This document shows, in pieces, positions 5,303-59,499 of a stretch of DNA of 64,000 nt. This DNA comes from Takakia lepidozioides (taxonomy: Eukaryota; Plantae; Bryophyta). Position numbers and translations under genes: made by a program. The stretch covers positions 27,838,001 through 27,902,000 of the forward strand of contig CM060731.1 of NCBI GenBank assembly GCA_030704615.1. The letters run 5' to 3'. Positions within the stretch are counted from its first letter, which is position 1; each line of letters starts with the position of its first letter. Under the pieces are notes generated by a model. That model worked only from the letters and a program-made list of their open reading frames with translations, was not told where the DNA came from and did no database searches.

Positions 5303-6709
5303 TCACAGGTCAAGAACCTGACAAGTGACCAACTCCACCGAGCCGAAACTCCCCCTTGCAATGCTTTTCCAGCCCAATTCAGCTTCACCACCTTCAGGCG
5401 TAGAAGGTGGCAGATTGCTGTTGCTGTTCTCACCCAGTTCTGCCCTTAGTACTGCCACGTTGTCATTGATGTCCTTGGTTATCACATGGAGCTTACCGCC
5501 AAATCCCGCCAACAGGTAGGGTGATTCTGAATCCGTCAGGTCCAACAGAATGGGGACCTTCCTCAGCACAACCTTCCAGGCATCTTGCTCAGAGTCGTAC
5601 ACCTTGATCTTGCTGCCATCCATGGAGCTTGTGGGGTCTAGGGCATACAAGCGACCATTGACGACCACGCTCAATTTTGTGCCAGCTTGTCGGGCGGGCC
5701 AATCTTCCCCCATTCCTTGGGGCATCTCTACCCACTGCTGTTGTAGCGGATCATAAACCTCACCCCCCACATCCACAAAGAAAGGCCAAGAGTAGAGACT
5801 CTGAGGGACACACAACCGACCCTTGAATGCTGCCATCCCCGTGGCAATTGGCTTCAACATGTCAGCCAGGAAGGCCGTGGGAAGAACCTGGGCTCGTTTG
5901 AAAGGCATGCTTGTAATTGGTGTCCAGGAGTCGCTTGCTGGCTCGTACACTTCCGCGGATTGCAACGGGGTCAAGCCGCCACGCCCTCGGTCCACACCCC
6001 CCACAGCATAGAGTTTGTCGTCCAACACGCCTGTCTTGCAATAAGCCCTTGCCGTGGCCATGGCTGCAGCCTCGCTCCAAGCATTCGTTCTCGAATCATA
6101 CCGCCACACACACCTCATGGCGCACGCTCTCGAAAATCCCCCCAGCACATACAGGCATCCGTCAATGGCACCCGCCGAGCAACCACAGAATGGCGTCCTA
6201 TCCAAGCTCCCTTTTCGCCTGAACCACCCCCTGAACAGCCCAGAGATCCGCAACCCCCGTGACGGTCCAACAGGGGTCCACCACCCCCAGGCTTTATCTT
6301 GCGCTTCCGGCTCTCGATTGATCATCTCTGGCATCGCCGGCAGCCTCCGCCATTTCCCATCCAAAGGATCCAGCGCATGCCATGTCAACCTCTCCTCCTC
6401 GTCCTTCATCAACACATACAGCCATTCTTCCGTCAACGCTAGCTCCCTCCTCAACTCAAAAATCTCCGCAGTTGCAAGCACCTCCTGCCATGACTTACAC
6501 ACACATCTCAACAGCGAGTGCGACCCCCGTGGCACCCTTGCCAAAATCTGCAGAGAAATCTCTTCCGGAAGCCCTGGAATCAGCACCGGCCTTTGGTCCA
6601 CATCCCCCACGTCCACCGCCACTCTCTGCCTCTTGCTCGACTCTCCCTGCGGCCTCTCCTCCTCCTCCTCCAACCTCCTGCACCTCGCAAAGCTCAAAAT
6701 CGCCCCCAT
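5303..6709 (-). CDS. F-box/kelch-repeat protein (intronless ORF)
   Basis: F-box LIPGLPEEISLQILARVPR...CVCKSW; kelch repeats with GG motifs (LYVLGG, LYAVGG, AEVYEP..SW). The ORF is uninterrupted; the probable ATG is MGAILS (~6709). Confidence 0.93.
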   Translation of the reverse strand: MGAILSFARCRRLEEEEERPQGESSKRQRVAVDVGDVDQRPVLIPGLPEEISLQILARVPRGSHSLLRCVCKSWQEVLATAEIFELRRELALTEEWLYVLMKDEEERLTWHALDPLDGKWRRLPAMPEMINREPEAQDKAWGWWTPVGPSRGLRISGLFRGWFRRKGSLDRTPFCGCSAGAIDGCLYVLGGFSRACAMRCVWRYDSRTNAWSEAAAMATARAYCKTGVLDDKLYAVGGVDRGRGGLTPLQSAEVYEPASDSWTPITSMPFKRAQVLPTAFLADMLKPIATGMAAFKGRLCVPQSLYSWPFFVDVGGEVYDPLQQQWVEMPQGMGEDWPARQAGTKLSVVVNGRLYALDPTSSMDGSKIKVYDSEQDAWKVVLRKVPILLDLTDSESPYLLAGFGGKLHVITKDINDNVAVLRAELGENSNSNLPPSTPEGGEAELGWKSIARGSFGSVELVTCQVLDL

Positions 6710-44340: not shown

Positions 44341-45388
44341 AGGGCAATTACCTACAACTTGTACATGATTATCATGTACAAAAGACACACCTTTCTGTGG
44401 GGCACTCTGCAAATTCATGGAGACCTCACAGGCATATTGAGAGGGTAGTACATATGCCGGCAGTGCTACTGGTGTAGGGGACAACAAAACTGATGAACAC
44501 TTTGCAGTTGCCTCAACAATATGGGGGGATGGATTGAGTTCACCTGCAGACCAACCCTCCATGTCATCATCCCCCTCCATTTCTGAATGCCCAATTAATG
44601 AGCCTATTGTGTTTGGCTTTGGTGGCGGTGAAGAAATTGCCTTGAACAGGTTGAGTGGTGAGCCCATAACATGAGAAATAGTCTCATTTGTTGTCTATGG
44701 CGCAAAGGTGGTGCATGGTGGACTTGTAGGCTGTGAATCTGACACATTCATGCCAAGTTTAGCTGCGAGCGCAATGTTGAATGCAGCTGCTGCCTCCAGT
44801 TGGACTTGGACTGCTTCCAAAGCTGCCTTGGAACTGGCTTCCATCTGCACTTGTTTGTTTTCCATAGCATCGAGGCAAGCTGCTAGTGAACCAATTCCCT
44901 GCCCCATCACATAGAACAACAATTCACTACACTGACTGTGATGAACTAGTAAGAAAAAGAACCAAACGGCAACTAGCAATGGCATGGAAATCACGAATAT
45001 GTAATTCACACCAGAATTGGTACTGAGTTTTTATACCGTTGTGGCTGCACTGCCTGTACATCCCGACCCGTAGCCTTTGTCACTCCTGGCGCTACCGGCG
45101 ATCTCCTGCAAACTTGTGTACGGTCCAGTCTCCTTCTCCTGTGATTGCAACAAACTTGCAAGTGTAAATGACTAGCATAGCACACTGCCAATAGTAAAAA
45201 ATTATCTAGGATAGCGTCAATGACTCCCCCTCAATAAGAGTGCTTAGTTTCTTGCTGGCGCCCAACTCTGAGAAGGCCCCCAAGTAGTAGCAATGTGTAC
45301 TAATTCCATCCATATAGGAATAGACTATGAGCTCCAGCCAAAAAAACCCAACACATAAAGTTTGTCAATGCAAAACAATGTGGGAACT

Positions 45389-45713
45389 TGTCAAGTTATT
45401 TTACCACTAGTGTGAAACTAGCTAGGAAATAGCTAGCTTTTACATATTGACATTTGGGATTGGCCCAAGTGTCAATCCAGGGGTCAAGGCAGATTTAGGC
45501 CCTGAGTGGTTATCTTCACGGCAAGCGCGGGAGGCTCATCTTTCTCGAGTTGAGCCTCACCGCGCCTAGCTATGGCGCCGTAGTGTGGATTCCCCATGGC
45601 GTGGGGTGCACTTGGCTTGACTTGTATTTGAGTGATGAGGTTATATATGCATGAGTTTATGCTTCATCTTTGTGAGCTCGCATGAGCTTGTGCTTGTATT
45701 CTTCTTCTTTATC
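45389..45713 (+). repeat. Terminal repeat A1
   Basis: Matches 57375-57700 with 1 indel and 1 substitution seen. Confidence 0.95.
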
Positions 45714-45730
45714 ACTCGAGAAAGATCAGC
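45714..45730 (+). promoter_or_regulatory. Putative self-priming primer-binding site
   Basis: actcgagaaagatcagc is 16/17 complementary to 45534-45550 inside A1; there is no TGG-type tRNA PBS. Confidence 0.55.
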
Positions 45731-47252
45731 TCGTATCTATGAGTGCTAGATACGAGTTAGTTGTAGCACTTGTGGTCTTTGCTTGAGAATGAGAGAAACC
45801 AAGTTGTTATGCAAGGAGCACCATGGAGCTCTTGGTTGTTAGAAGCGGAGGCGATGTGGGTTACGAGGTGGTAGACCTTGGCATTCGATCTTCAGCTTCA
45901 GAGATGAAAGCACATGCTGCACGGTAATTCCAGAGCACCTTGATGGTTTCAGATTGTGTACATGCATGAGCAAGCACGATTGGGAAGAGGACCAGTCAAG
46001 AGCAAGTTATAGTGGCTTTGGTGGCAAAGCTGAGAACTGGACTTGGGAATGCGAGCTGTCATTGTGTGAAGGATTGCAAGACCAAGCGAAAGGGCTGATT
46101 TGGCTTGGGGCAAATCAGTGCACTTTGTGGAGTATGGTGAGATTGGGTTTCAATCTCGAGCTTCAGCATTGAGAGGGCTCTTGTCGTGGCAAGAGCAGGG
46201 CTGGAACAGGAGCTAAGAGGTGCGGCAAGGCCATGGAATGTGCACCTAGGGTTTCAGAGCTTGGAAGAAGAGCTCTTGCACCACAAGAGAAGTGTCTTGT
46301 GGCTGGAAATGTAAGCCTTAGGGTTTCAGGAGCTTGGCAAGGGCTGTGGAGTGCTTAGTCTTGTCTTAGAGAGCATCAAGGAGCCAAGGAGCCAAGATAG
46401 GGGGCTGATATCTCTTGTGTGAAGAGGTTGCATGTGTGGAGCATGTATTCAGCTCATTGAAGCTTCCATCTTCAAGCTTGGAGGGCAAGCAAGGAAGAGG
46501 GAAGGGCTGACTTCCCTTATGTGAGGGCAATGTATGTGTGGAGCATGCTATCAGCCTGGTGAAGGCTTGCACTTTTAGGTGTGGGAGTGCAAGAAAGGAA
46601 GGAAGGGGCTGGTTTCCCTGTAGGGCATGTAGAGCATGCTTTCAGCCTGCTGAAGCTTGTATTATCAGGTTTGTGGGTGCAAGAAATGAAGCAAAGGAGC
46701 TGATTCTCTTATGGTGAGAGTGGGGCATGTGTGGAGCATGCCTTCAGCCCATTGAGGCTCTTGTTTTCAAGCCTTAGAGAGCTAGAACGGAAGGTCTAGG
46801 GCTGGTTTCCACTTGGAGTGAAAGAACAGCACTTGTAGGGCCTATGTGAGTTGGGGTTTCAACTTCAAGCTTGAAGGGAGCGCAACTCTTGAAGCAACAG
46901 GTGTAGAGGGCTGGAATAGGCTCTAAGACAGATGCTATGGCCAATGAGGGGAGTGCTTGAATGAGTGCTCACAAGGGCTGGGAACCAGCAGGGCTTGGTT
47001 GTTTGCCATTGAGTTTAGTGGCGTGTTTGGGGAGGCTAAGTGAGAAAGAAGGCTTGGTTTGTGGCAACCACCTCATGGCTTAGGGCTACTATGGTGGTGT
47101 GTGGGAGCCGAAAGAGCAAGGATACCTTGCTGATTTCCTCACAGCCACCATAGCTCGGTGGAAAGAAGCCTAGAGTCCAAGAGACACAAACCCTAGCTTG
47201 GCGTGGCTAAACCCCTTGGAGAAATGGCTAAACTGCCAGAGCGGCCATGTGT

Positions 47253-48880
47253 GGGGCTGTGACAGGCTGTGGCAAGCTGTGACAGGCTGTGATGGGCTGT
47301 GTCAGGCTGTGACAGGCTGTGCCCAGTGGCCTTTGGGGCTGTGACGGGCTGTGCGGGGCTGTGACAGGCTGTGCCCTGAGGCCTGTGGGGCTGTGACGGG
47401 CTGTGACATGCTGTGCCCTGTGCCCTGTGGGGCTGTGCGGGGCTGTGACAGGCTGTGCCCTGAGGCCTGTGGGGCTGTGACGGGCTGTGACAGGCTATGG
47501 CGAGCTGTGACAGGCTGTGCCCATGGCCTTTGGGGCTGTGACGGGCTGTGACAGGCTGTGCCCAATGGCCTGTGGGGCTGTGACGGGCTGTGACAGGCTG
47601 TGGCAAGCTGTGACAGGCTGTGATGGGCTGTGATGGGCTGTGACAGGCTGTGCCCTGTGCCCTGTGGGGCTGTGACGGGCTGTGTCAGGCTGTGACAGGC
47701 TGTGCCCAGTGGCCTTTGGGGCTGTGACGGGCTGTGACAGGCCGTGCCTGAGGCCTTTGGGGCTGTGACGGGCTGTGAGGGGCTGTGACAGGCTGTGCCC
47801 TGTGCCCTGTGGGGCTGTGACGGGCTGTGTCAGGCTGTGGCGAGCTGTGACGGGCTGTGACGGGCTGTGACAGGCTGTGGCAAGCTGTGACCGGCTGTGA
47901 TGGGCTGTGATGGGCTGTGATGGGCTGTGACAGGGTGTGCCCTGTGCCCTGTGGGGCTGTGACGGGCTGTGTCAGGCTGTGACAGGCTGTGCCCAGTGGC
48001 CTTTGGGCTGTGACGGGCTGTGCGGGGCTGTGACAGGCTGTGCCCTGAGGCCTATGGGGCTGTGACGGGCTGTGACAGGCTGTGGCGAGCTGTGACAGGC
48101 TGTGCCCATGGCCTTTGGGGCTGTGACGGGCTGTGAGGGGCTGTGACAGGCCGTGCCTGAGGCCTTTGAGGCTGTGACGGGCTGTGAGGGGCTGTGACAG
48201 GCCATGCCCATGGCCTTTGGGGCTGTGACGGGCTGTGAGGGGCTGTGACAGGCCGTGCCTGGGGCCTTTGGGGCTGTGAGGGCTGTGAGGGGCTGTGACA
48301 GGCCGTGCCCATGGCCTTTGGGGCTGTGACGGGCTGTGAGGGGCTGTGACAGGCCGTGCCTGAGGCCTTTGAGGCTGTGAGGGGCTGTGAGGGGCTGTGA
48401 CAGGCCGTGCCCTAGGCCTTTGAGGCTGTGACGGGCTGTGATGGGCTGTGGCAAGCTGTGACAGGCTGTGATGGGCTGTGATGGGCTGTGACAGGCTGTG
48501 CCCTGTGCCCTGTGAGGCTGTGAGGGGCTGTGACAGGCCGTGCCCATGGCCTTTGGGGCTGTGACGGGCTGTGAGGGGCTGTGACAGGCCGTGCCCATGG
48601 CCTTTGGGGCTGTGAGGGGCTGTGAGGGGCTGTGACAGGCCGTGCCTGAGGCCTTTGGGGCTGTGACGGGCTGTGAGGGGCTGTGACAGGCCGTGCCCAT
48701 GGCCTTTGGGCTGTGACGGGCTGTGAGGGGCTGTGACAGGCCGTGCCTGAGGCCTTTGAGGCTGTGAGGGGCTGTGAGGGGCTGTGACAGGCCGTGCCTG
48801 AGGCCTTTGAGGCTGTGACAGGCTGTGAGGGGCTGCGACAGGCTGTGCCCAGTGGCCTGTGGGACTGTGACGGCTGTGAC
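47253..48880. repeat. Minisatellite of ~10-bp GGCTGTGAC(A/G) units with higher-order variants, in the retroelement leader
   Basis: Directly visible tandem array of ~1.6 kb. Confidence 0.97.
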
Positions 48881-49617
48881 CAGTGAGCTGTGTGGGCCTG
48901 TGCTGGTCTGTGGTGGCCCGTGTTGACCTGTGGACGGCCTGTGCTGACTCGTGGAGGCACTGGTGGACTGCCTAAGGACTGGCATGTGGTCTGGAAGGCC
49001 GAATTTTGAAGCTCGTGGAGGGCGGTTTGAGGAGTATCTTCATGATATTCCCATGGTCATGCAAGTGAGGATAGAGAGGAGAGGCAGAGTGTTGGGATGA
49101 GAGCATGCTGGGGTTAGGCATTGCTTTAGCTTCTCTTCCTCGTAGTTTCCACCCTCTCATTAGGCCAAGACCTTTCCGTAGGTGGAGGCAAGAGTCAGTC
49201 CGGGTTTGGGCTGGGGTGTCCTTGCAGGAGCAACACCGTGGAGTTGTTTTTGGTGTGGGGGAGTTGTCGTTCTGATTTCTTGTGTTTGGATCCCCTCCAT
49301 ACCTGCATGCTTGACTGTGCGCCATGCTAGTTTTGTGTGGGCGCTTGTTTTTATAGGTGATTGGTCCGGATTTGATCACCGGCCAGTCCTAGAGCATGCT
49401 GTCGATGGTGAGGCTGGGGTGATGACCAGCCAGACCATCATTGTTTCTCCTGTGGTGAGGTTGGAGGTGATGACCAGCCAACCATAGGAGTGCTTGCGGT
49501 GGATGCAGGTACAGGTGTAGGCTATGTTAGGAACTTAGTATTCCAAACCATAAGCCGCAACAGGTTCTCTACCCGGTTACCTTGTGGAGAGGGGGTTAGG
49601 GACATGTTCATGACCGG

Positions 49618-52600
49618 TTGAGTGTCAACACGGAGGTGCCACTAGTTGCTGGGGACAGTGCCGGTTCGAGCACTAGCGATACTAGTGGGTACACGAGACG
49701 AGGTGTGCGGTTTAGGCCACCTTCACCTCCTGTGTCTTCCACGGAAGGTTCTGATTCGGATTGTGAATCAGGAGGGCTCATACCGGCGGTGCAAGTTGTT
49801 TCTTTGCCATTGTTGTGGGACACAATGGAGGAGATGTATGGAGCTACCAAGGGGCCACGAAGGTACTCTGGGGCGGTGGGCACCATTGAGTTGGATGATT
49901 TTATCCAAGAGTTTGATAGTTGGTGTGATTTGCAGCAAATGCGCAATCCACAACTATTTACGCCGTTCATGGCATGGAAAGGGCTGTTTCAGCACCTTGA
50001 GGGGCCGCCTATGGATGATTACCATGAGTTCAGGCGGGGGCATGAGGTTGAGATCGAGGAGTGGAGGATGTACTGGTCACCCGACTATGTCTCCATCACT
50101 AGGGGCACTAGAGCCACGAGGGCAGTGGCTACACCTGCCGCTGCACCGGCAGCTTCAGCAAGCAGCAGTGGGACTGGTGGTACAGTAGCTACGACGTCCA
50201 CCCAAGCCACTACCGCACCAGCACTAGCACCCGTGCCTGCCTTCAACCCTGTTGTGGAGTTCTTCGAAGAGTTGAGAGGGAACTACCAAGGGGTGAGGAC
50301 AGAGAAGTTGCGGAGCTTGCAAGAGTTCCAACGGAAGCCGACCGAGAGCTTGAGGGAGGCTTTCACTCGCATGAGGCGCTTGATAAATGTAACCCAAGGG
50401 GTTACGGAAGCTCAGGCAGTCCAATTCTGGTATGGGATATTGGACAAGGAGCTGAGGAGAAGGGTGCGGGATGCAACTCTCCTACAAGCGGCCCAACCCA
50501 CCTTAGCAAATGTGTTTTTGCTGGCAGAGCGGATAGAGCTCAACATGGTGGAGGAACGAGTGGTCATGGTGGGATTTGCTAAGGAGACACCACGGGGTAG
50601 TGGTGCTCCTAGCCAACCACTACCTCAACGTGCTCAAGGCAACAAGGGGGCTCAGGTGAAGCTCAGGGAAGGGCAGAGAGGACCTCAGATGCAGGGGTCT
50701 CTCCCTTCATTTGCTGGCCAACAACGGGCGGATGTGGTGTGCTGGACATGTGGAGGACCCCATGTCAAGAAGGATTGTCCAGAGGGAGGCAAAGGGCCGG
50801 CACATGCACAGCCTGCACAGTTACAGTGTGGGCATTGTGGCAAACACGGGCATGGAGAGGCTCAGTGTTATGGTTTGCATCCTGAGTTGCGCCCAGGCCA
50901 GTTCCAAGGGAACAATGGTGGCCGGGGGCGAGGTGGAGCAGCCCAGAGAGGACGAGGTGGCCAGCCACGAGGTGCAGGCCAAGGGCAAGCTCAACGTGGC
51001 CAAGGACGCGGAGGTCAGGGTGTTGACCAAGGCATGGCCAACCGGCTTCAGCAGCTAGAGCAGAGGCTCGCTGCCATGGCTACAGCTCAGGTGGTACCGG
51101 CTCTAAGGCCGGATGGTCCACCTCCTGCTCCTGAGGGAGGAGATATGGGAGGCATGGGATTCATGTGTGGAGCAGCACTACCACTAGTGCAGGTGGAGTC
51201 TGCTGCAGCCGTGACTCGAGGAGCAGCACGAGTTCCTGAGCCACGAGGTGCAGAGGTGGAGTTGGATCCACAGCGTGGGGAGGCAAGCCGTCAGGCTAGG
51301 CTTCCTCAGTCATTCACATTGGCGGAGACAGTGTCGACGCCATCCATGGCACCTAGTTCTCGCCCGACTGTTACCGAGGCGGAGGTTACTATGCCATTGG
51401 GGAGAGCTACACGGGTAGCACCACTACCTAGTGTTGCCAAGGCTACGGCAGCTAGTGTGCTGCTAGGAGCGGCCACATCTGTGTGCCAGGCTCCATTGTT
51501 CTCGGCTACCATGATTGCGACGCCGGGGGTAAGACCAGCTGAGGTGTTCAGGCTGGCAGCTACACTCTGTGAGAGTGGGGAGGTTACTTCATCTTCTGCG
51601 GAGATAGTGGGAGGTGTAGTGCCGGAGGGATCCTCGGATTTGAGGGTCAAGACTGCCACGGCGGCGCCATGGCAAGCTGCAGCTGCCAGGTTGATGGAGC
51701 TGCCAGCTAGGCCAGCCATTGAGCGCGCCATGGTGACACCTGGAGTTGTCATGTTAGACAACCAGGATGGCATTTTCTGTTTGAGTGGACCGGCAGGCAA
51801 GAGGTACCGGCCACTGCGAGTCTTGTTGGACTCGGGAGCTCAGCCACTGATGCTGGGCAGAGCTGCTATTGCAGGCTTGGGCCTCACGGAGGCGGATATG
51901 GAGCCTTGTCCTTTCCAGATACAGACGTCTCTGGGAGGATCGGAGCAGGCTCGGGGCATGACACGGCATGAGTTGGCTATCAGACTACGGCCGGATCACC
52001 CTACAGATGGCTCAGTGATGCGAGCCAAGGCCATTGTGACAGACGCAGTCTCATACGATGTCCTGGTTGGTGGGGCAGTGTTGTACCCCATGGGCTTCAC
52101 CCTGGATTTTTGGGAGGAGTCAGCTTCCTATAGGCCTGCATGGCAGTCAGGGGAGGGCCGGCGTGTGCAGCTCCCTGTGACGTTCATAGGAGGAGTTGCG
52201 GTTGCCCAGCGAGGCAAGATGCCGACACTAGCAGCATTCACAGCGGCAGTGAGTTGGCCTAGAGAGTTGCTTGAGGGCAATGCTCATTCAGAGGATGTAC
52301 CACCTCCGGGAGAGCAGGATGACATGTATGGTATGGCGGAGTTGCCTACCATGGTTGCTCAGACTCCATTGTGGGGCACGAGCAAGGATTTGCAGCGGGA
52401 TGCTGATCGACGGGTGCAACAAGCCTGGGTGGAGGCTTTTGTACCGTCAGGAGAGGAGGAGAGTGTGGGGATTGCACCAGGACCACCTCAATTGTCTCCA
52501 TTGGACACCACACCTATTGTGTGGCAGTCTCCGGATGAAGGCATTTGTCTTCTGGACTTGTTTGGCGGGATCAGCACCGGATTGGCTGCTGTGTTACAGG

Positions 52601-53790
52601 CAGGTGTACGAGTTCGGCGTTACCTGTATGTGGAGAGGGATGAGACTGCACGACGCGTTTCACTTCGCCATGTTGCTCAGTTGGTGCAGCGGTACCCTGA
52701 GTTGTTGTCGGTGTCTGCAATTCGTGGATATCAGCAGGCCTTGCCAGCAGACATTTCGTTGCTGGGGGCGCAGGATTTGGAGCGGGTTGGCTCCATTGAT
52801 CTGGTAGTGGCAGGTTGGCCCTGCCAAGGGCATTCATCAGCCGGGCATGGCAATGGATTGCGAGACTCGAGGTCGGGTCTGTTTTGGGAGATGGTGCGGG
52901 TTTTGCGCCACTTGCAGCTTCATCAAGCTGTATCTCCAGCATACATCTTGGAGAATGTGCCACTGATGGGCGATTCTCGGGCCAGGGTGATGGCCAGTGT
53001 GCATCAAGTCCGGTCGTGGCTTGGGTCAGCAGTGTTGCTAGATGCAGCTACAGTGGGGTCACGGGCTCATCGTCCACGGCTATGGTGGACTAACATGATG
53101 CCACCCGCACTGCTCAAGCGTGCATTTGATGGGGTGCAGCGGCCAGCACATCTCACAGTGGATAACATTCTGGACACAGGGAGGCAGTCTCAACGTGTGA
53201 GACACGATGACCGTTCGCCTTTGGCAGTGGTCAACAAGGTGGGTCAACCACGAGCAGCATTACCTACACTGCTCAGCTTCCCAGGATCGCATGCTTTCCG
53301 GGATAGTGGACCTGGCCTCCTGTGGGATGCTCAGTTGCAGCAGTTAGTGGAGCCTAATGCTGACGAGCGTGAGCGGGCAATGGGTTTTACCACTGGTACC
53401 ACGGCGGTGTCGTCTCTTTCTGAGGCATCACGTCGTCAAGTGTTGGGGCAAGCAATGGATCTCAATTGCTTGACCTGGATTATCAGCTTGGCTCTAGCTG
53501 AGCAACGCAGAGTGCGGAATACACTTCCCTCAATGGTCTCTCTGCCTACCGAGACGGTACAGGCAGTGAGTGGGGGCGAGCATGTGAGGACCACGGGGTG
53601 CATGCATCCATGGCACACGTGGGAGGTGCTCGAGGTTCAGAGGGAGTTGGCAGCCAAGGCGGCTGTGATGGATGAGGTTGGGGATTCTTCTCGAGTTGAG
53701 GAGGTCCTCAAGGATGAGATGATGGGGCAGGATGATGCCTTGTCATTGACTGAGCAGGTAGGGAGTACTGCTCAAGAGGTTGCAGCATAG
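49618..53790 (+). CDS. Gag (two Zn knuckles) - aspartic protease - C5 cytosine DNA methyltransferase polyprotein
   Basis: CWTCGGPHVKKDC, CGHCGKHGHGEAQC, VLLDSGAQ; DNMT motifs DLFGGIS, YVERD, AGWPCQGHS, ILENV, RPRLWWTN, ERAMGF, LGQAMD. The true start codon is uncertain. Confidence 0.93.
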   Translation: MSVNTEVPLVAGDSAGSSTSDTSGYTRRGVRFRPPSPPVSSTEGSDSDCESGGLIPAVQVVSLPLLWDTMEEMYGATKGPRRYSGAVGTIELDDFIQEFDSWCDLQQMRNPQLFTPFMAWKGLFQHLEGPPMDDYHEFRRGHEVEIEEWRMYWSPDYVSITRGTRATRAVATPAAAPAASASSSGTGGTVATTSTQATTAPALAPVPAFNPVVEFFEELRGNYQGVRTEKLRSLQEFQRKPTESLREAFTRMRRLINVTQGVTEAQAVQFWYGILDKELRRRVRDATLLQAAQPTLANVFLLAERIELNMVEERVVMVGFAKETPRGSGAPSQPLPQRAQGNKGAQVKLREGQRGPQMQGSLPSFAGQQRADVVCWTCGGPHVKKDCPEGGKGPAHAQPAQLQCGHCGKHGHGEAQCYGLHPELRPGQFQGNNGGRGRGGAAQRGRGGQPRGAGQGQAQRGQGRGGQGVDQGMANRLQQLEQRLAAMATAQVVPALRPDGPPPAPEGGDMGGMGFMCGAALPLVQVESAAAVTRGAARVPEPRGAEVELDPQRGEASRQARLPQSFTLAETVSTPSMAPSSRPTVTEAEVTMPLGRATRVAPLPSVAKATAASVLLGAATSVCQAPLFSATMIATPGVRPAEVFRLAATLCESGEVTSSSAEIVGGVVPEGSSDLRVKTATAAPWQAAAARLMELPARPAIERAMVTPGVVMLDNQDGIFCLSGPAGKRYRPLRVLLDSGAQPLMLGRAAIAGLGLTEADMEPCPFQIQTSLGGSEQARGMTRHELAIRLRPDHPTDGSVMRAKAIVTDAVSYDVLVGGAVLYPMGFTLDFWEESASYRPAWQSGEGRRVQLPVTFIGGVAVAQRGKMPTLAAFTAAVSWPRELLEGNAHSEDVPPPGEQDDMYGMAELPTMVAQTPLWGTSKDLQRDADRRVQQAWVEAFVPSGEEESVGIAPGPPQLSPLDTTPIVWQSPDEGICLLDLFGGISTGLAAVLQAGVRVRRYLYVERDETARRVSLRHVAQLVQRYPELLSVSAIRGYQQALPADISLLGAQDLERVGSIDLVVAGWPCQGHSSAGHGNGLRDSRSGLFWEMVRVLRHLQLHQAVSPAYILENVPLMGDSRARVMASVHQVRSWLGSAVLLDAATVGSRAHRPRLWWTNMMPPALLKRAFDGVQRPAHLTVDNILDTGRQSQRVRHDDRSPLAVVNKVGQPRAALPTLLSFPGSHAFRDSGPGLLWDAQLQQLVEPNADERERAMGFTTGTTAVSSLSEASRRQVLGQAMDLNCLTWIISLALAEQRRVRNTLPSMVSLPTETVQAVSGGEHVRTTGCMHPWHTWEVLEVQRELAAKAAVMDEVGDSSRVEEVLKDEMMGQDDALSLTEQVGSTAQEVAA

Positions 53791-56700
53791 CAACCACGGG
53801 ACGCGTCCTCTACCTCTAAGCCCACTGGACTTAAGGTTGTAGTTACGGAGGACAATTGGGAGCCTGACATTGGACCCATTGTCACCGGAGGAGAGAGACG
53901 ACGTATACGGCGGTTCCTGAGGGCTTACAGGAATTGCTTTGCCTTCAGTTTGAAGGACTTGGGAGCACTGAAGGGTCAAGAGATCCGTATTGAGTTGGCC
54001 ACTGACACGCCAATCTTTCGGAGACCCTATAGATACAGTGACATGGAGAGGTCTTTGATTCAGATGAGGACTCAAGATCTCTGGGAGGCAGGTTTGGTGG
54101 AGCTCTCTGGTGGAGAGTATGCTTCAGCCACAGTGATGCCAGCCAAGAAGGATGTCTATGGCAATTGGACGGAGAGACGTATGTGCGGTGATTACCGGCC
54201 TGTAAATCGTCAGACCAAGTCCGATAAGTATGCCATGCCAACACCAGAGGAGATCTTTGATGCCATCGGGCATGCTAAGGCCTTTAGCACTTTGGATTTA
54301 CGATCCGGATATCACCAGTTGCCAATCAAGGAGGCGGACAAGCAGAAGACGACATTCTGGGGGATCAATGAGCACGGCAAGGATTGCCTATATCAGTGGC
54401 GGTTCTTACCATTTGGGCTTAAGAATGCTCCTGCAGAGTTTCAGAGAGTCATGGATAGGATTCTAGCAGGGGTGGACTTTGCTCGGTGCTACATAGATGA
54501 CATCATCATCTTTAGTGTTACGATGGAGGAGCATGAGAGACACCTTCAGGTGGTATTGGAGCGCTTGAGAGCGCACGGATTGAAGTTGCATCCGGGGAAG
54601 TGCAAGTTTTTCCACAACCAGATTGAGTATCTGGGTCACATGATATATCCTGGAGGATTGGGGGTACAGCAGACTAAGGTAGAGGCCATTGCACAAATTC
54701 CACGCCCCACGGATGTGAGCCGAGTTCGAGCTTTCATGGGGTTGGCAAACTATTATAGACGGTTTGTCAAGGGATTTAGTACCATTGCAAAGGCTCTAAC
54801 CAAGCTGACCAAGGTGGACCAGGAGTGGCAGTGGGAAGATGAGCAGGAACGAGCTTTTCAAGAGCTCAAGGCGAGGTTGACCTCGGCGCCTATCTTGAGA
54901 CGACCTATCAGGGGGCGTCCCTTTCAGCTGCATACGGATTGGAGCATGCTGGGGCTTGGAGCGGTGCTCACACAGGTGGATGATGAGGGAAGAGAGTTCG
55001 TAGTGGCTTACGCTAGCCGCTCGAACAACGCTGCAGAGGCTAAGTACAGCTCATATGAGGGAGAGTGCTTAGCTGCAGTGTGGGCCGTGGCACACTTCAG
55101 GTGCTATCTATACGGCAATCTTTTCACCCTTGTCACGGATCACCAGCCACTCAAGTGGTTGATGGAGTCAGACAAGCTTACGGGGAAGCTTGCACGGTGG
55201 GCACTTATACTCCAGGAGTATGACTTTCAGGTTGTGCATCGACCGGGTTTGGTCAATCGGGATGCGGATGGATTGAGTCGCAATCCATGCATGAGCCAGC
55301 AGGATGACACTGGAGCTCGGTGGCATGGTGAGACGGACGAGGAGATGGTGCCGGGATGGCACGCATCTGCATTTTTGTGTATCTTGGCATCGGGAGGTCA
55401 GATTGGACCTACAACAGGGATGACTGTAGACGGAGTGTCTGAGGACCCTGAGGCTAGTGATGAGCTAGGTGGTGCCAGAGATATACATGAGGATTCGGCT
55501 GTGTTGGACTACCTCCGCACGGGAGACACGGCAGCCATTGTGACTGCCAGGGAGAGGGATCGGATCCTGCAACGAGCCAAGAGGTTCAAGTGGGAGGGGA
55601 TACACCTACTTCGAGTGTGGGAGGATGGTCGGGTGAGGATTGTGCCTCACCCCACACAGCGTGCACGGTTAGTGCGGCATGCCCATGAGGAGTTGGGGCA
55701 TTTTGGAGTGCGACGCACTCACAGTTTACTGCAGGGGCAGTATTGGTGGCGTGGTATGCATACAGAGGTGCAACAGTTTGTGGCTAGGTGCATGGTGTGT
55801 GACAGGGTGCGTGCTTCATTCAACGCCCCTACACCACAGTTGCATCCTTTACCTATCATGGGATTGGGCTACAGGTGGAGTCTTGACTTCGCAGGACCGT
55901 TGCCACTGACTATGCGCCACCACAGATATGTGTTGGTGATGGTGGAGCACTTCTCCAAGTGGATTGAGTTGGTTCCATTGCCTGACAAGGCTAGTGAGGG
56001 GGCTGCGTATGCATTCTTGGATCGTGTGCTTAGCCGATTTGGTGCTCCAGCTGAGGTACTCACGGACCAAGGGAGAGAGTTCTTGGGGGAGTTTCAGGCT
56101 TTGTGTGATAAAGCCTTGATAGACCACCGCACCACTTCTCGGGATCATCCTGAGGCCGATGGCTTAGCAGAGAGAGTTGTTCAGACGGTGAAGAGGGGTT
56201 TGCGCAAGTATGGCTTGCAGAAGGGACACCTAGGAGATTGGGATCTTCAGGTTCCTTGGTTAGCCATGGGCTACAGGTTCAGCAAACAAGCATCACTTGC
56301 CTCCTTCTCACCATATTTCCTTCTCTTTGGCCGAGAGCCGGATTTGCCTGCAGCCATTCGTAGGGACACTGCTCAAGTCCTTAACCTTGACGATCCGGAC
56401 GTGTGGGTACGTGCATGTGATCAGCGTGCAGAGTTGTTCAAGAAAGTCATGCCCATGGCTTTTGAGAACCTTGCCATTGCACAGCACCGTGATACGTTGA
56501 GGTATGCCACTATACGTGGTGGAGGATATCGTCCTGGGGTTCGGAGGTTTAGCCCTGGTGACTATGTTTATTTGCAGCAGACTGCTCCTACGACTCTGGA
56601 TGTTACTGCAGGGCGTGTTATTCTGAGGGTTCGAGAGGTGTTGCCCTCAGGGGTCCTGATCTTAGAGGGTCGGGATGGCATGACTTGGAAAGACCATGTG

Positions 56701-56924
56701 CGTAATTGTGCGCCATGTCACCTTCCCAATGTCGATGGCAGAGTTGACCCAAACTTGGCAGTGGTACCTGCAGGTTTGAGGTGCATGCTCTGTGGGTCTG
56801 CCAAAGGGGCAGCCACCATGCTGGTGTGTGATCGTGCTCAAGGGGTTGGCATATGGGATGCTTGACACCACCTCTTGAGAAGGTTCCTGACGGAGATTGG
56901 TTGTGTCCACACTGCTTGGGATAG
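53791..56924 (+). CDS. Pol: RT - RNase H - integrase (HHCC, DDE) - PHD finger (1-nt frameshift at ~56835)
   Basis: [65 protein letters not shown]; same reading frame as ORF1. Confidence 0.93.
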
Positions 56925-57173
56925 TGGCAGTGGACATGACTGGAGGCAGCTAACAAGACATGGGAGGCCAAGCTCATAGGAGTCAATACATGAGATCCCA
57001 AGCTCAAGTTCACAGGTTGCAAGACGGCGACTAACGATGGGGCAACTCTTGCACCCGGCCTCTTGATCTATCGAGTTTGAGTGTAGTAGGGATAGTGGTG
57101 GAGGACTTAGTGAGGCTATGGTCACTATCACATCTTGTGGCTACCTGGACTTAGAGGGACCTAAGCACCAGCT

Positions 57174-57180
57174 AGGGGGG
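57174..57180 (+). promoter_or_regulatory. Polypurine tract
   Basis: agggggg just before repeat B1. Confidence 0.6.
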
Positions 57181-57182
57181 CG

Positions 57183-57891
57183 ATTGTGTGGACTAGTGAC
57201 TGCCATAGTGGGCAGCGTAGTGGCAGCCTAGTGACTGACTAGTTGTAGCCTAGTGGTTGGACTAGTGGCTGGACTAGTGGTAGACTAGTGGTATACTAGT
57301 GTGTGGTGTGCACATGTGTTGTGTGGTTTTGGACAGCGATGTAGTTGTGTAGCGATATGTATGCGCACGACAGCTGTCAAGTTATTTTACCACTAGTGTG
57401 AAACTAGCTAGGAAATAGCTAGCTTTTACATATTGACATTTGGGATTGGCCCAAGTGTCAATCCAGGGGTCAAGGCAGATTTAGGCCCTGGAGTGGTTAT
57501 CTTCACGGCAAGCGCGGGAGGCTCATCTTTCTCGAGTTGAGCCTCACCGCGCCTAGCTATGGCGCCGTAGTGTGGATTCCCCATGGCGTGGGGTGCACTT
57601 GGCTTGACTTGTATTTGAGTGATGAGGTTATATATGCATGAGTTTATGCTTCAGCTTTGTGAGCTCGCATGAGCTTGTGCTTGTATTCTTCTTCTTTATC
57701 TATTGTGTGGACTAGTGACTGCCATAGTGGGCAGCGTAGTGGCAGCCTAGTGACTGACTAGTTGTAGCCTAGTGGTTGGACTAGTGGTTGGACTAGTGGT
57801 AGACTAGTGGTATACTAGTGTGTGGTGTGCACATGTGTTGTGTGGTTTTGGACAGCGATGTAGTTGTGTAGCGATATGTATGCGCACGACA
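57183..57891 (+). repeat. 3' terminal block B1 (57183-57372) - gc - A2 (57375-57700) - t - B2 (57702-57891)
   Basis: B1 and B2 differ by 1 substitution seen; A2 matches A1. Confidence 0.95.
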
Positions 57892-57920
57892 AACTTCCTA
57901 TGTTGTAAGAGAAGTATACC

Positions 57921-59243
57921 AGTCGTGCTACAACACCGCTGATTCCACTGCGACCCGATCGAGATGTATTCTTCACACATCCCCGCGCCTTGACACCATT
58001 TGCCTGGAATTTCTTGAAATCAGTGGAACCCCAACTAACAACTAGTTGTGCCCATGTCTTGTCTGGCACATGATGGGGTTTGGGCAGCCCCACACTATAG
58101 TAATTTTTGAACAGCTTATTTCGTTGGTACTTGAGCTGCCCGCAAATTGTTTTTGTAATAGCCTTTATGTTAAGACCAGGAGGTCCGTATTCCCAATCTG
58201 AAGCCAAGATCTCCATGATCTTTTCAATTAAGTGTAATGGTTGATCCTGAGCATACAATGACCAGTCCAACAAACGTTGACACTGCCCTCGCAGAGCTGT
58301 CATCCACTGGTTCCGAGCAGGACCTTCAGGGTTTCCAAGTTCATCACAAGAAATGAAAAATTTCCTCCTCCCTACAGCCACATTCTGAACAGCCTGGTCT
58401 CTCAGATCTTTTGCAAGTGCCCTTCTTTCCTTCCTTAAAGCATTTTTGCGTTCTATAGGAGTCACACCTGATGTCCCCCCAGGAGTAAGGCTGGAATCCT
58501 GCAAGGTTTCAGTAGTACCTTGCATGTTACCACCTTCACTCTGTTGGGGCTGGACTGTTGTCTCCCACCCCACAGGATGATGCGGAGCAAATGCATCCTC
58601 GGTCTGTTTCAGAATGCCTTTCCCTTTTAGGGTATTAGGTGTACCTGGAGATGTTGGATAGAGAGGTGGCCGCGGTGCAGTGAAGCTCGAAGGTGCCGGC
58701 TGTTGTACTCCACTATAGTTGGATCCTGAAGGTTGGTGGCCACCATACTGGACCTGCCCCTGGTGTGGTCTTGCAGGGCTGGTAGGATAGAGGGAGGAAG
58801 TAGGTTGGTTGTACATAGGCCGAGGAGGATACATACTATGGGGATGCATTCCATAATGGTGGTAAATGGAATACCCACCTTGACTAGGATCATGCATTGG
58901 AGCGCCTGCAGGTGGAGCAAAAGAATTGTAATTCTGGCACTGAGGATCATTGTTTGGAGGTTGATAGTGAGGATACGGTATGTGCCCATGCAGATTATAC
59001 CCTGACATGGCAGGATACTGCGGGTACATAAGCGGATACGAGGGAGGAGCCGATACTGGTGGATACAAGGGAGCTGGAACGTCAGTCTGTGGAGTGGGCG
59101 GGGCTGGTTTTTCGTAAGTTGGAACAACCGCGCCACTCATCACAGCAGTTGGCACAATAGTTGGTGCACACTTTGCTGGAGTAAGAGACTTATGCTCGTC
59201 CGCATCCTTCCCTGCAATTCCCTTCCTTTTTTTTACTGAACTC
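57921..59243 (-). CDS. Exon of a CACTA accessory (TnpA/Ptta-like) gene; continues at ~45130 once the retroelement is removed
   Basis: Pro/Tyr-rich N-terminus, then W..ALRG.C..LLDW...KPHHV...W..LV..W...ARGCVKNTSRSGRSGISGVVARL|gt; next exon EKETG...KGYG. Confidence 0.6.
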
Positions 59244-59499
59244 TGCACACATTGCTCAACATAAACATGAGAAACAATACCACCATACTACTAGGGATGG
59301 CAAACCTAGTGGGTAAGCGAAGCCCAAAGGCCTATGCAAGAAGACCCTGTCAGTCAGACCTGCCTATAACAGTGAGGAGTCTTCTAAAGAATGGAAGGGT
59401 ACAGTGGAAATGACTGTCTACAATCCAAGACAACCCTGAAAAACTGGAGTACATCACAAAGGGGTACAACGTGCCCATTAGTTCTTCTGAGATTGCTGA

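Follow-up and report, generated by a model that had tools for sequence, protein, structure and literature searches.

The window, as we call the whole 64,000-nt stretch of the Takakia lepidozioides genome analysed here (contig CM060731.1, positions 27,838,001 to 27,902,000), holds an LTR retrotransposon with split direct repeats, which spans 45389-57891 in the order A-genes-B-NN-A-j-B, NN standing for two spacer bases and j for the joint between the second copies of A and B (Table 1). We consider it probable (roughly 0.7) that this element, a recent insertion, belongs to the streptophyte Gypsy-DNMT3 lineage of Ty3/gypsy elements and replicates with a permuted LTR. We also favour, with somewhat less confidence, the view that in this ancient streptophyte lineage the integrase attachment site has moved from the tips of the cDNA to an internal CA-NN-TG, the joined two-LTR cDNA being the obligatory substrate of integration.

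Table 1. Features of the split-repeat element, in coordinates of the 64-kb window.
Feature	Position	Strand	Basis
Left copy of target-site duplication (TSD), AACT	45385..45388	+	direct reading; single AACT in empty-site contigs
Repeat A1, starts TGTCAAG (left integrase end)	45389..45713	+	in-window blastn
Box ATCTTTCTCGAGT inside A1, complementary to primer site	45538..45550	+	exact complement; copy in A2 at 57525-57537
Primer-binding site ACTCGAGAAAGAT, adjoins A1; self-priming type, not tRNA	45714..45726	+	complement to box
Minisatellite, 10-nt and 51-nt units, in untranslated leader	47254..48880	+	repeat search
ORF1: gag (CCHC knuckles), aspartic protease, DNMT3-like C5 methyltransferase	49618..53790	+	Pfam, motifs
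ORF2: reverse transcriptase, RNase H, integrase (HHCC zinc domain, DD35E core)	53950..56865	+	Pfam
Polypurine tract (PPT) AGCTAGGGGGGCG, adjoins B1	57170..57182	+	direct reading
Repeat B1, ends CACGACA	57183..57372	+	in-window blastn
2-nt spacer GC between right-end CA and left-end TG; putative internal attachment site	57373..57374	+	read directly
Repeat A2	57375..57700	+	in-window blastn
Extra T at A2/B2 joint	57701..57701	+	read directly; run contigs
Repeat B2, ends CACGACA (right integrase end)	57702..57891	+	in-window blastn
Right copy of TSD, AACT	57892..57895	+	direct reading; run contigs

According to both a repeat search and blastn within the window, A1 and A2 differ by one mismatch and one single-base indel, and B1 and B2 by one mismatch. 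An earlier note on this DNA had given the coordinates of both repeats and reported that B is lacking at the 5' end; the coordinates proved correct to the base, and blastn found no B upstream of A1 and no further copy of either repeat in the 64-kb window. The B1/A2 joint reads CACGACA-GC-TGTCAAG, the core of which (GACAGCTGTC) is the 10-bp palindrome GACA-GC-TGTC, and the A2/B2 joint reads TTTATC-T-ATTGTG. At the outer boundaries AACT precedes TGTCAAG and AACT follows CACGACA, forming a 4-bp duplication, and the two spacer bases are absent there, just as the earlier note had claimed. Logan contigs of public runs were mapped onto window positions 56500-58100, and the unoccupied site was recovered: contigs of X1 and X12 join 45355-45384 straight to 57892 onward. 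Because this empty site carries a single AACT, the boundaries of the element and its 4-bp duplication are real. Both the likely source sample and a second study contain the empty-site allele, and the insertion in the window is therefore polymorphic or heterozygous, or recent. In another X12 contig an unrelated flank adjoins the same first base of TGTCAAG, representing another copy of the family. The k-mer depth within the element exceeds that of the single-copy flank by about two orders of magnitude (a depth figure and not a copy number), and the family is therefore a high-copy one. A 477-aa minus-strand ORF without a Pfam match (57815-59248) extends from the right-hand flank into B2; the empty site near it is spanned by an X12 contig that may derive from RNA.

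The coding content is that of a Ty3/gypsy element with an added methyltransferase. ORF1 contains a DSG protease motif, weak Pfam matches to gag and aspartic protease, and a C5 methyltransferase domain (PF00145) at residues 1045-1154, while ORF2 matches RVT_1, RT_RNaseH, Integrase_H2C2 and rve, and its integrase residues D646, D706 and E741 are invariant among relatives. A search for tyrosine recombinases (Phage_integrase) gave no match in ORF1, ORF2 or eight other ORFs, on both strands and at E values up to 1. The earlier note's description of an Ngaro/PAT-like layout in an integrase-encoding element is thus upheld, the DDE domains being matched and a tyrosine recombinase not. ORF2 shares the frame of ORF1, with one in-frame stop between them (53788-53790); in relatives such as P0014 the gag-PR-DNMT and RT-RH-IN parts are fused. 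Relatives have a PHD finger downstream of the integrase; in the window copy this region is broken or out of frame (56850-56870), and the copy is thus slightly damaged despite its near-identical repeats. The untranslated leader extends over 3.9 kb from the primer site to gag and holds the 1.6-kb minisatellite, in which a 10-nt unit (GGGCTGTGAC) is nested in 51-nt and 152-nt periods, as well as a second repeat with a 102-nt unit at 46401-46749.

The extent of the reverse-transcribed LTR follows from the priming sites. The primer site of the window copy is an exact 13-nt complement of its box in A1, a match reached in 0 of 300 shuffles, and a G-run tract adjoins the first base of B1 in every copy or relative read. 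Across the clade the primer site after A1 is the exact complement, over 10-18 nt, of a box within A, and its sequence changes between subclades while pairing with the box is retained (Calypogeia, TTAGAGAACT; L064, AATCACCAAAAGT; moss clade, AATTCTAGAAAAA; Klebsormidium nitens, ACTTGCAACTTGAGAAGT, an 18-nt self-primer; Closterium, ACAACGAGAAAG). Given the PPT before B1 and this covarying primer site after A1, the standard scheme of reverse transcription makes B-NN-A the LTR, in agreement with the earlier note, which had deduced B+A from the same two sites. In such an LTR, B1 would be the 5' part of U3, and A1 would contain the 3' part of U3, followed by R and U5. Furthermore, B2 begins one base past the PPT position and A2 ends one base short of the primer-site position; as the start of B2 corresponds to the start of plus-strand DNA and the end of A2 to the start of minus-strand DNA, the A2/B2 joint has the anatomy of a two-LTR junction. 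Such complementarity is the signature of self-priming as known from Tf1/sushi elements, whose primer site pairs with their own RNA. As in those elements (for self-priming of the Tf1/sushi type see PMC6317226), the primer site of the window lineage pairs with a box in its own 5' RNA and not with a tRNA, but the lineage carries a PHD finger instead of a chromodomain, and the likeness in priming does not imply membership of that clade.

The outer tips of the predicted cDNA vary from one member to the next: B starts with ATTG, AGTTG, ATACATG, GGTTTGG, AGTAAACGG or GTGGG, and A ends without CA across the clade. Judged from these sequences, the tips are not conserved integrase ends. The sole portions of A and B that are conserved clade-wide are ...CACGACA and TGTCA..., which meet inside the LTR, and the distance between their CA and TG is exactly 2 nt in 33 of the 33 joints read. 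An unbiased motif search had returned spacers of 0 or 5 nt for seven of these joints; moss B ends hold a near-repeat of the end motif, and direct reading at the start of A2 gives 2 nt in all seven. The spacer bases themselves vary (GC in 11 or more joints, otherwise AC, GT, AT, TA or AA). The palindromic junction emphasised in the earlier note is therefore present in the window copy but is not what the clade conserves, which is the exact 2-nt CA-TG spacing.

Recessed CA-3'OH ends with 2-nt 5' overhangs are the normal processed state of integrase substrates. With the two CAs 2 nt apart, nicks 3' of CA on both strands would yield precisely such ends, and loss of the overhang bases at repair would match the absence of the spacer from the genomic ends, which carry the 4-bp duplications. 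It is thus most likely that the DDE integrase opens the internal B/A joint. A parallel is found in the two-LTR circles of retroviruses, where the integrases of foamy virus and HIV-1 have been reported to cleave palindromes at the LTR-LTR junction (PMC1180852, PMC1905944) and reuse of circles has been described (PMC4372172); there too, a DDE integrase cuts an internal CA...TG junction. The retroviral junction, however, does not exist before circularisation, spaces CA and TG by 4 nt and belongs to a side or reserve pathway, whereas that of the window lineage is encoded in each LTR, has 2 nt and would appear to be the sole route.

The layout recurs well beyond Takakia. The nearest pol relatives (72-79% identical) are metagenome and transcriptome proteins and, among named organisms, those of the liverworts Calypogeia, Riccia and Marchantia, with further relatives in Klebsormidium and Closterium. 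Calypogeia has four copies of the form A-int-B-NN-A-B (L001, L088, L089 and L091) and one of the form A-int-B (L090), with perfect duplications in 5/5 (GTCA, ATTG, GATT, CTAA and, in L090, TCAC), and Riccia and Marchantia share the 3' structure of the split copies. In K. nitens (L085, used in place of L002, a truncated fragment without repeats) the ends are TGCC...GGCA, the joint is GGCA-GC-TGCC and the duplication TCTT, and the joint of the Closterium locus (L086) reads GACA-GC-TGTC. A metagenome survey covering 80 loci with a pol alignment yielded 13 complete split copies, 2 that are cut within A2, about 13 showing the 3' part only and 6 of the form A-int-B; perfect 4-bp duplications flank 10 of 17 metagenome, Klebsormidium and window copies. 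B precedes A1 in none of the 25 loci with upstream cover, be it as a canonical B-A 5' LTR or as A-B-A-int-B. The Haematococcus locus (L087) is packed with tandem arrays that obscure its layout. At L046:4899-5165 the B2 end of one element adjoins the B end of a different, L064-like family, which may be a nested or adjacent insertion.

In a pol tree computed by a quick method, all rows with the split or the A-int-B layout form one clade (41 rows including L085, SH-aLRT 100). Its sister clade, which includes L083, has ordinary 629-bp LTRs (5716-6344 and 12645-13273 in L083) and a primer site of the tRNA-iMet type (TGGTATCAGAGC), and tblastn detected no DNMT domain in it. The same search located this domain in nearly all clade loci with sufficient upstream sequence, and found none in L014 or in L087, the layout of which is unreadable. 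As the sister clade combines a tRNA primer and ordinary LTRs with the lack of a DNMT, self-priming, the DNMT domain and the permuted layout map to the same branch. The A-int-B copies are dispersed within the clade, as expected of by-products, and could arise directly or by later recombination between B1 and B2. The split layout is kept between pols that are just 40-50% identical, and chance is excluded because layout, 2-nt spacing and perfect 4-bp duplications recur in many independent copies; the layout is thus a property of the lineage and not an accident. The earlier note had envisaged a one-off product or a family in which most copies bear canonical LTRs as the outcomes that would speak against its reading, and neither was found, the layout being clade-wide. 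Its prediction of TGTCAAG and CACGACA ends is supported, the ends being TGTCA... and ...CACGACA throughout. In older copies, most departures from CACGACA and TGTCA are C-to-T or G-to-A changes (CATGACA, CACAACA, CACGATA, TATCA), the pattern expected from decay of methylated cytosines.

Direct observation covers the structure of the element, its ends and duplications, the empty site, where the priming sites lie and how they covary, and the conservation across the clade; from these we infer the RNA ends, the joining of the tips and the integrase cut in the following replication cycle. Transcription would produce an RNA reaching from inside A1 to inside A2. Its minus strand would be self-primed, the box within A pairing with the primer site that adjoins A1, and its plus strand initiated at the G-run tract adjoining B1, resulting in a cDNA with B-NN-A as LTR at both ends. 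The outer tips of this cDNA, where B starts and A ends, would then be joined together to form the A2/B2 joint, either in a free two-LTR circle or, once integration has taken place, by the end joining of the host. The integrase would recognise ...CACGACA-NN-TGTCA... in the LTR copy beside the primer site and nick 3' of CA on both strands, so that each CA-3'OH end is recessed behind a 2-nt 5' overhang. Strand transfer, staggered by 4 bp, would finally give A-genes-B-NN-A-j-B with a 4-bp duplication and with NN lacking at the ends.

Since a free two-LTR circle would contain the B-NN-A site twice, in identical form, A-B-A-genes-B should form equally often. The corresponding product of opening distal to the primer site, A-j-B-NN-A-int-B, occurs in 0 of 25 loci, against 15 of the observed form. 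This one-sided bias may mean that only the LTR copy beside the primer site is a duplex substrate when the integrase acts, or that the joint is templated. Within standard reverse transcription, neither early nicking of the plus strong-stop duplex nor single-strand nicks nor linear cleavage with subsequent end joining accounts for a one-sided product, since each of them gives symmetric outcomes.

A templated joint is part of the alternative that survives best, namely a replication as in DIRS/Ngaro elements, in which the RNA would run from A1 into B2, B1-NN-A2 would template the outer ends, the entire arrangement, A2/B2 joint included, would be inherited and a DDE integrase would insert the product. 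We regard this as unlikely, though it accounts for the single arrangement seen, and the layout is identical to that of PAT/Ngaro and was called DIRS-like in PMC5890265. The states of the A2/B2 joint bear on both readings. In the window family about 62% of the depth in X1, and the entire depth in X5 and X12, lacks the T at 57701; the +T state, at about 38% of depth, is close to the frequency of the minority alleles of the window copy in B, a subfamily-like frequency that the templated route explains and that might indicate inheritance of the joint in this family. That route likewise accounts for the four Calypogeia copies, which share one precise A2/B2 joint, L088 departing from the others only in that 25 nt are deleted within B2. 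Of the A/B joints in the moss clade, about half are precise; one carries +18 nt and the rest range from -3 to +1 nt. The -2 form of the joint (CAAT|ACATG) fits a 2-nt AT microhomology, and its identical occurrence in two separate pol subclades, L018 and L020, argues against inheritance; the pol tree of the moss clade is too poorly resolved to place the joint states. L090 (11560-11660, Calypogeia fissa), flanked by a perfect TCAC duplication, lacks the terminal 125 nt of its 3' UTR together with the PPT, and what remains of the UTR continues into the first base of B across a 2-nt AT microhomology, as if a cDNA end had been truncated and then joined to the left tip. Overall, the indels and microhomology at the joint are compatible with end joining. 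Also against the templated route, the borders of A and B coincide exactly with the covarying self-primer site and the G-run PPT, which is expected only of cDNA tips; synthesis begun at the primer site cannot copy the A2/B2 joint; and the elements have 4-bp duplications and no tyrosine recombinase. The earlier note had expected a variable A2/B2 joint, and variation does exist to a modest degree (T or nothing in the window family, -3 to +18 nt in the moss clade), but the joint is invariant in the four Calypogeia copies; taken as a whole, its interpretation is partly supported.

Far less plausible still is that the true LTR is the 517-bp A-j-B, and that the layout was rearranged by recombination or autointegration and then spread as DNA or is specific to the window copy. 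A-j-B does have the TG...CA termini of an ordinary LTR, but among at least nine sources no copy has B after A1 or A before B1, the priming sites adjoin A1 and B1 and not A-j-B, and the copies are independent insertions, each with its own duplication, in a lineage whose layout is conserved at 40-50% pol identity. An assembly artefact in the window, for which nothing speaks beyond the general risk of mis-assembly of repeats, can practically be dismissed, given that other species, assembled independently, and metagenome contigs show the layout as well, that public-run contigs cover all joints and that the empty site was recovered.

Returning to the permuted LTR, its relation to known systems can be stated as follows. 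The element shares with canonical Ty3/gypsy elements the gag-PR-RT-RH-IN order, the DDE integrase, the TG...CA ends and a short duplication. In canonical elements, including L083, the cDNA tips are integrated and identical LTRs consequently bound the element, whereas the window element is bounded by A only on its left and by B-NN-A-j-B on its right, its integrase ends lie inside the LTR, and the whole is a circular permutation. Two identical bounding TG...CA LTRs, a mark of Ty3/gypsy elements, are found neither in the window copy nor in any other member of the clade. With Ngaro/PAT the element has in common the split direct repeats A1-genes-B1A2B2 and a B/A joint that equals right end plus left end; those elements, however, use a tyrosine recombinase and make no target duplication, in contrast to the DDE integrase, TG...CA ends, 4-bp duplications, classical primer site and PPT of the window lineage. 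The layout as such was previously on record: the legend of Fig. 4c in de Mendoza et al. 2018 (PMC5890265) describes the repeats of KnitGypsy-Dnmt3 from K. nitens as arranged as in DIRS, with the domains of Gypsy. This element belongs to the same pol clade (L085) and likewise has a DNMT3-like domain in its polyprotein and A-coding-B-A-B repeats, but its host is Klebsormidium and that of the window copy is a land plant. The 2018 paper is silent on its ends, duplications, priming sites and mechanism, and our literature searches for a published mechanism turned up this legend alone, a 2026 preprint merely citing the lineage. What is worked out here are the ends, the duplications, the priming sites and the occurrence of the layout in liverworts, mosses and Closterium.

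In the textbook account of LTR-retroelement integration, the two tips of a linear cDNA are inserted, and circles are held to be dead ends, contested retroviral data apart. The lineage described here represents a comparative, sequence-level case in which the cDNA tips are probably not the integrase ends, and what is found integrated can be understood as a two-LTR molecule after opening at an internal site. It also illustrates that split direct repeats alone do not indicate a tyrosine recombinase, and the permuted layout explains why LTR-finding software, and the plant classifications derived from it, would miss these high-copy elements. Since each genomic copy retains an intact internal attachment site, it is tempting to ask what keeps the chromosomes from being cut there and whether the DNMT that the element encodes matters for this. 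The mechanism could be tested in tractable plants and algae such as relatives of Marchantia and Klebsormidium. If true, it would be a natural, clade-wide instance of the long-disputed pathway in which the LTR-LTR junction serves as integration precursor, and split direct repeats like those of tyrosine-recombinase elements would have been reached by a convergent route.
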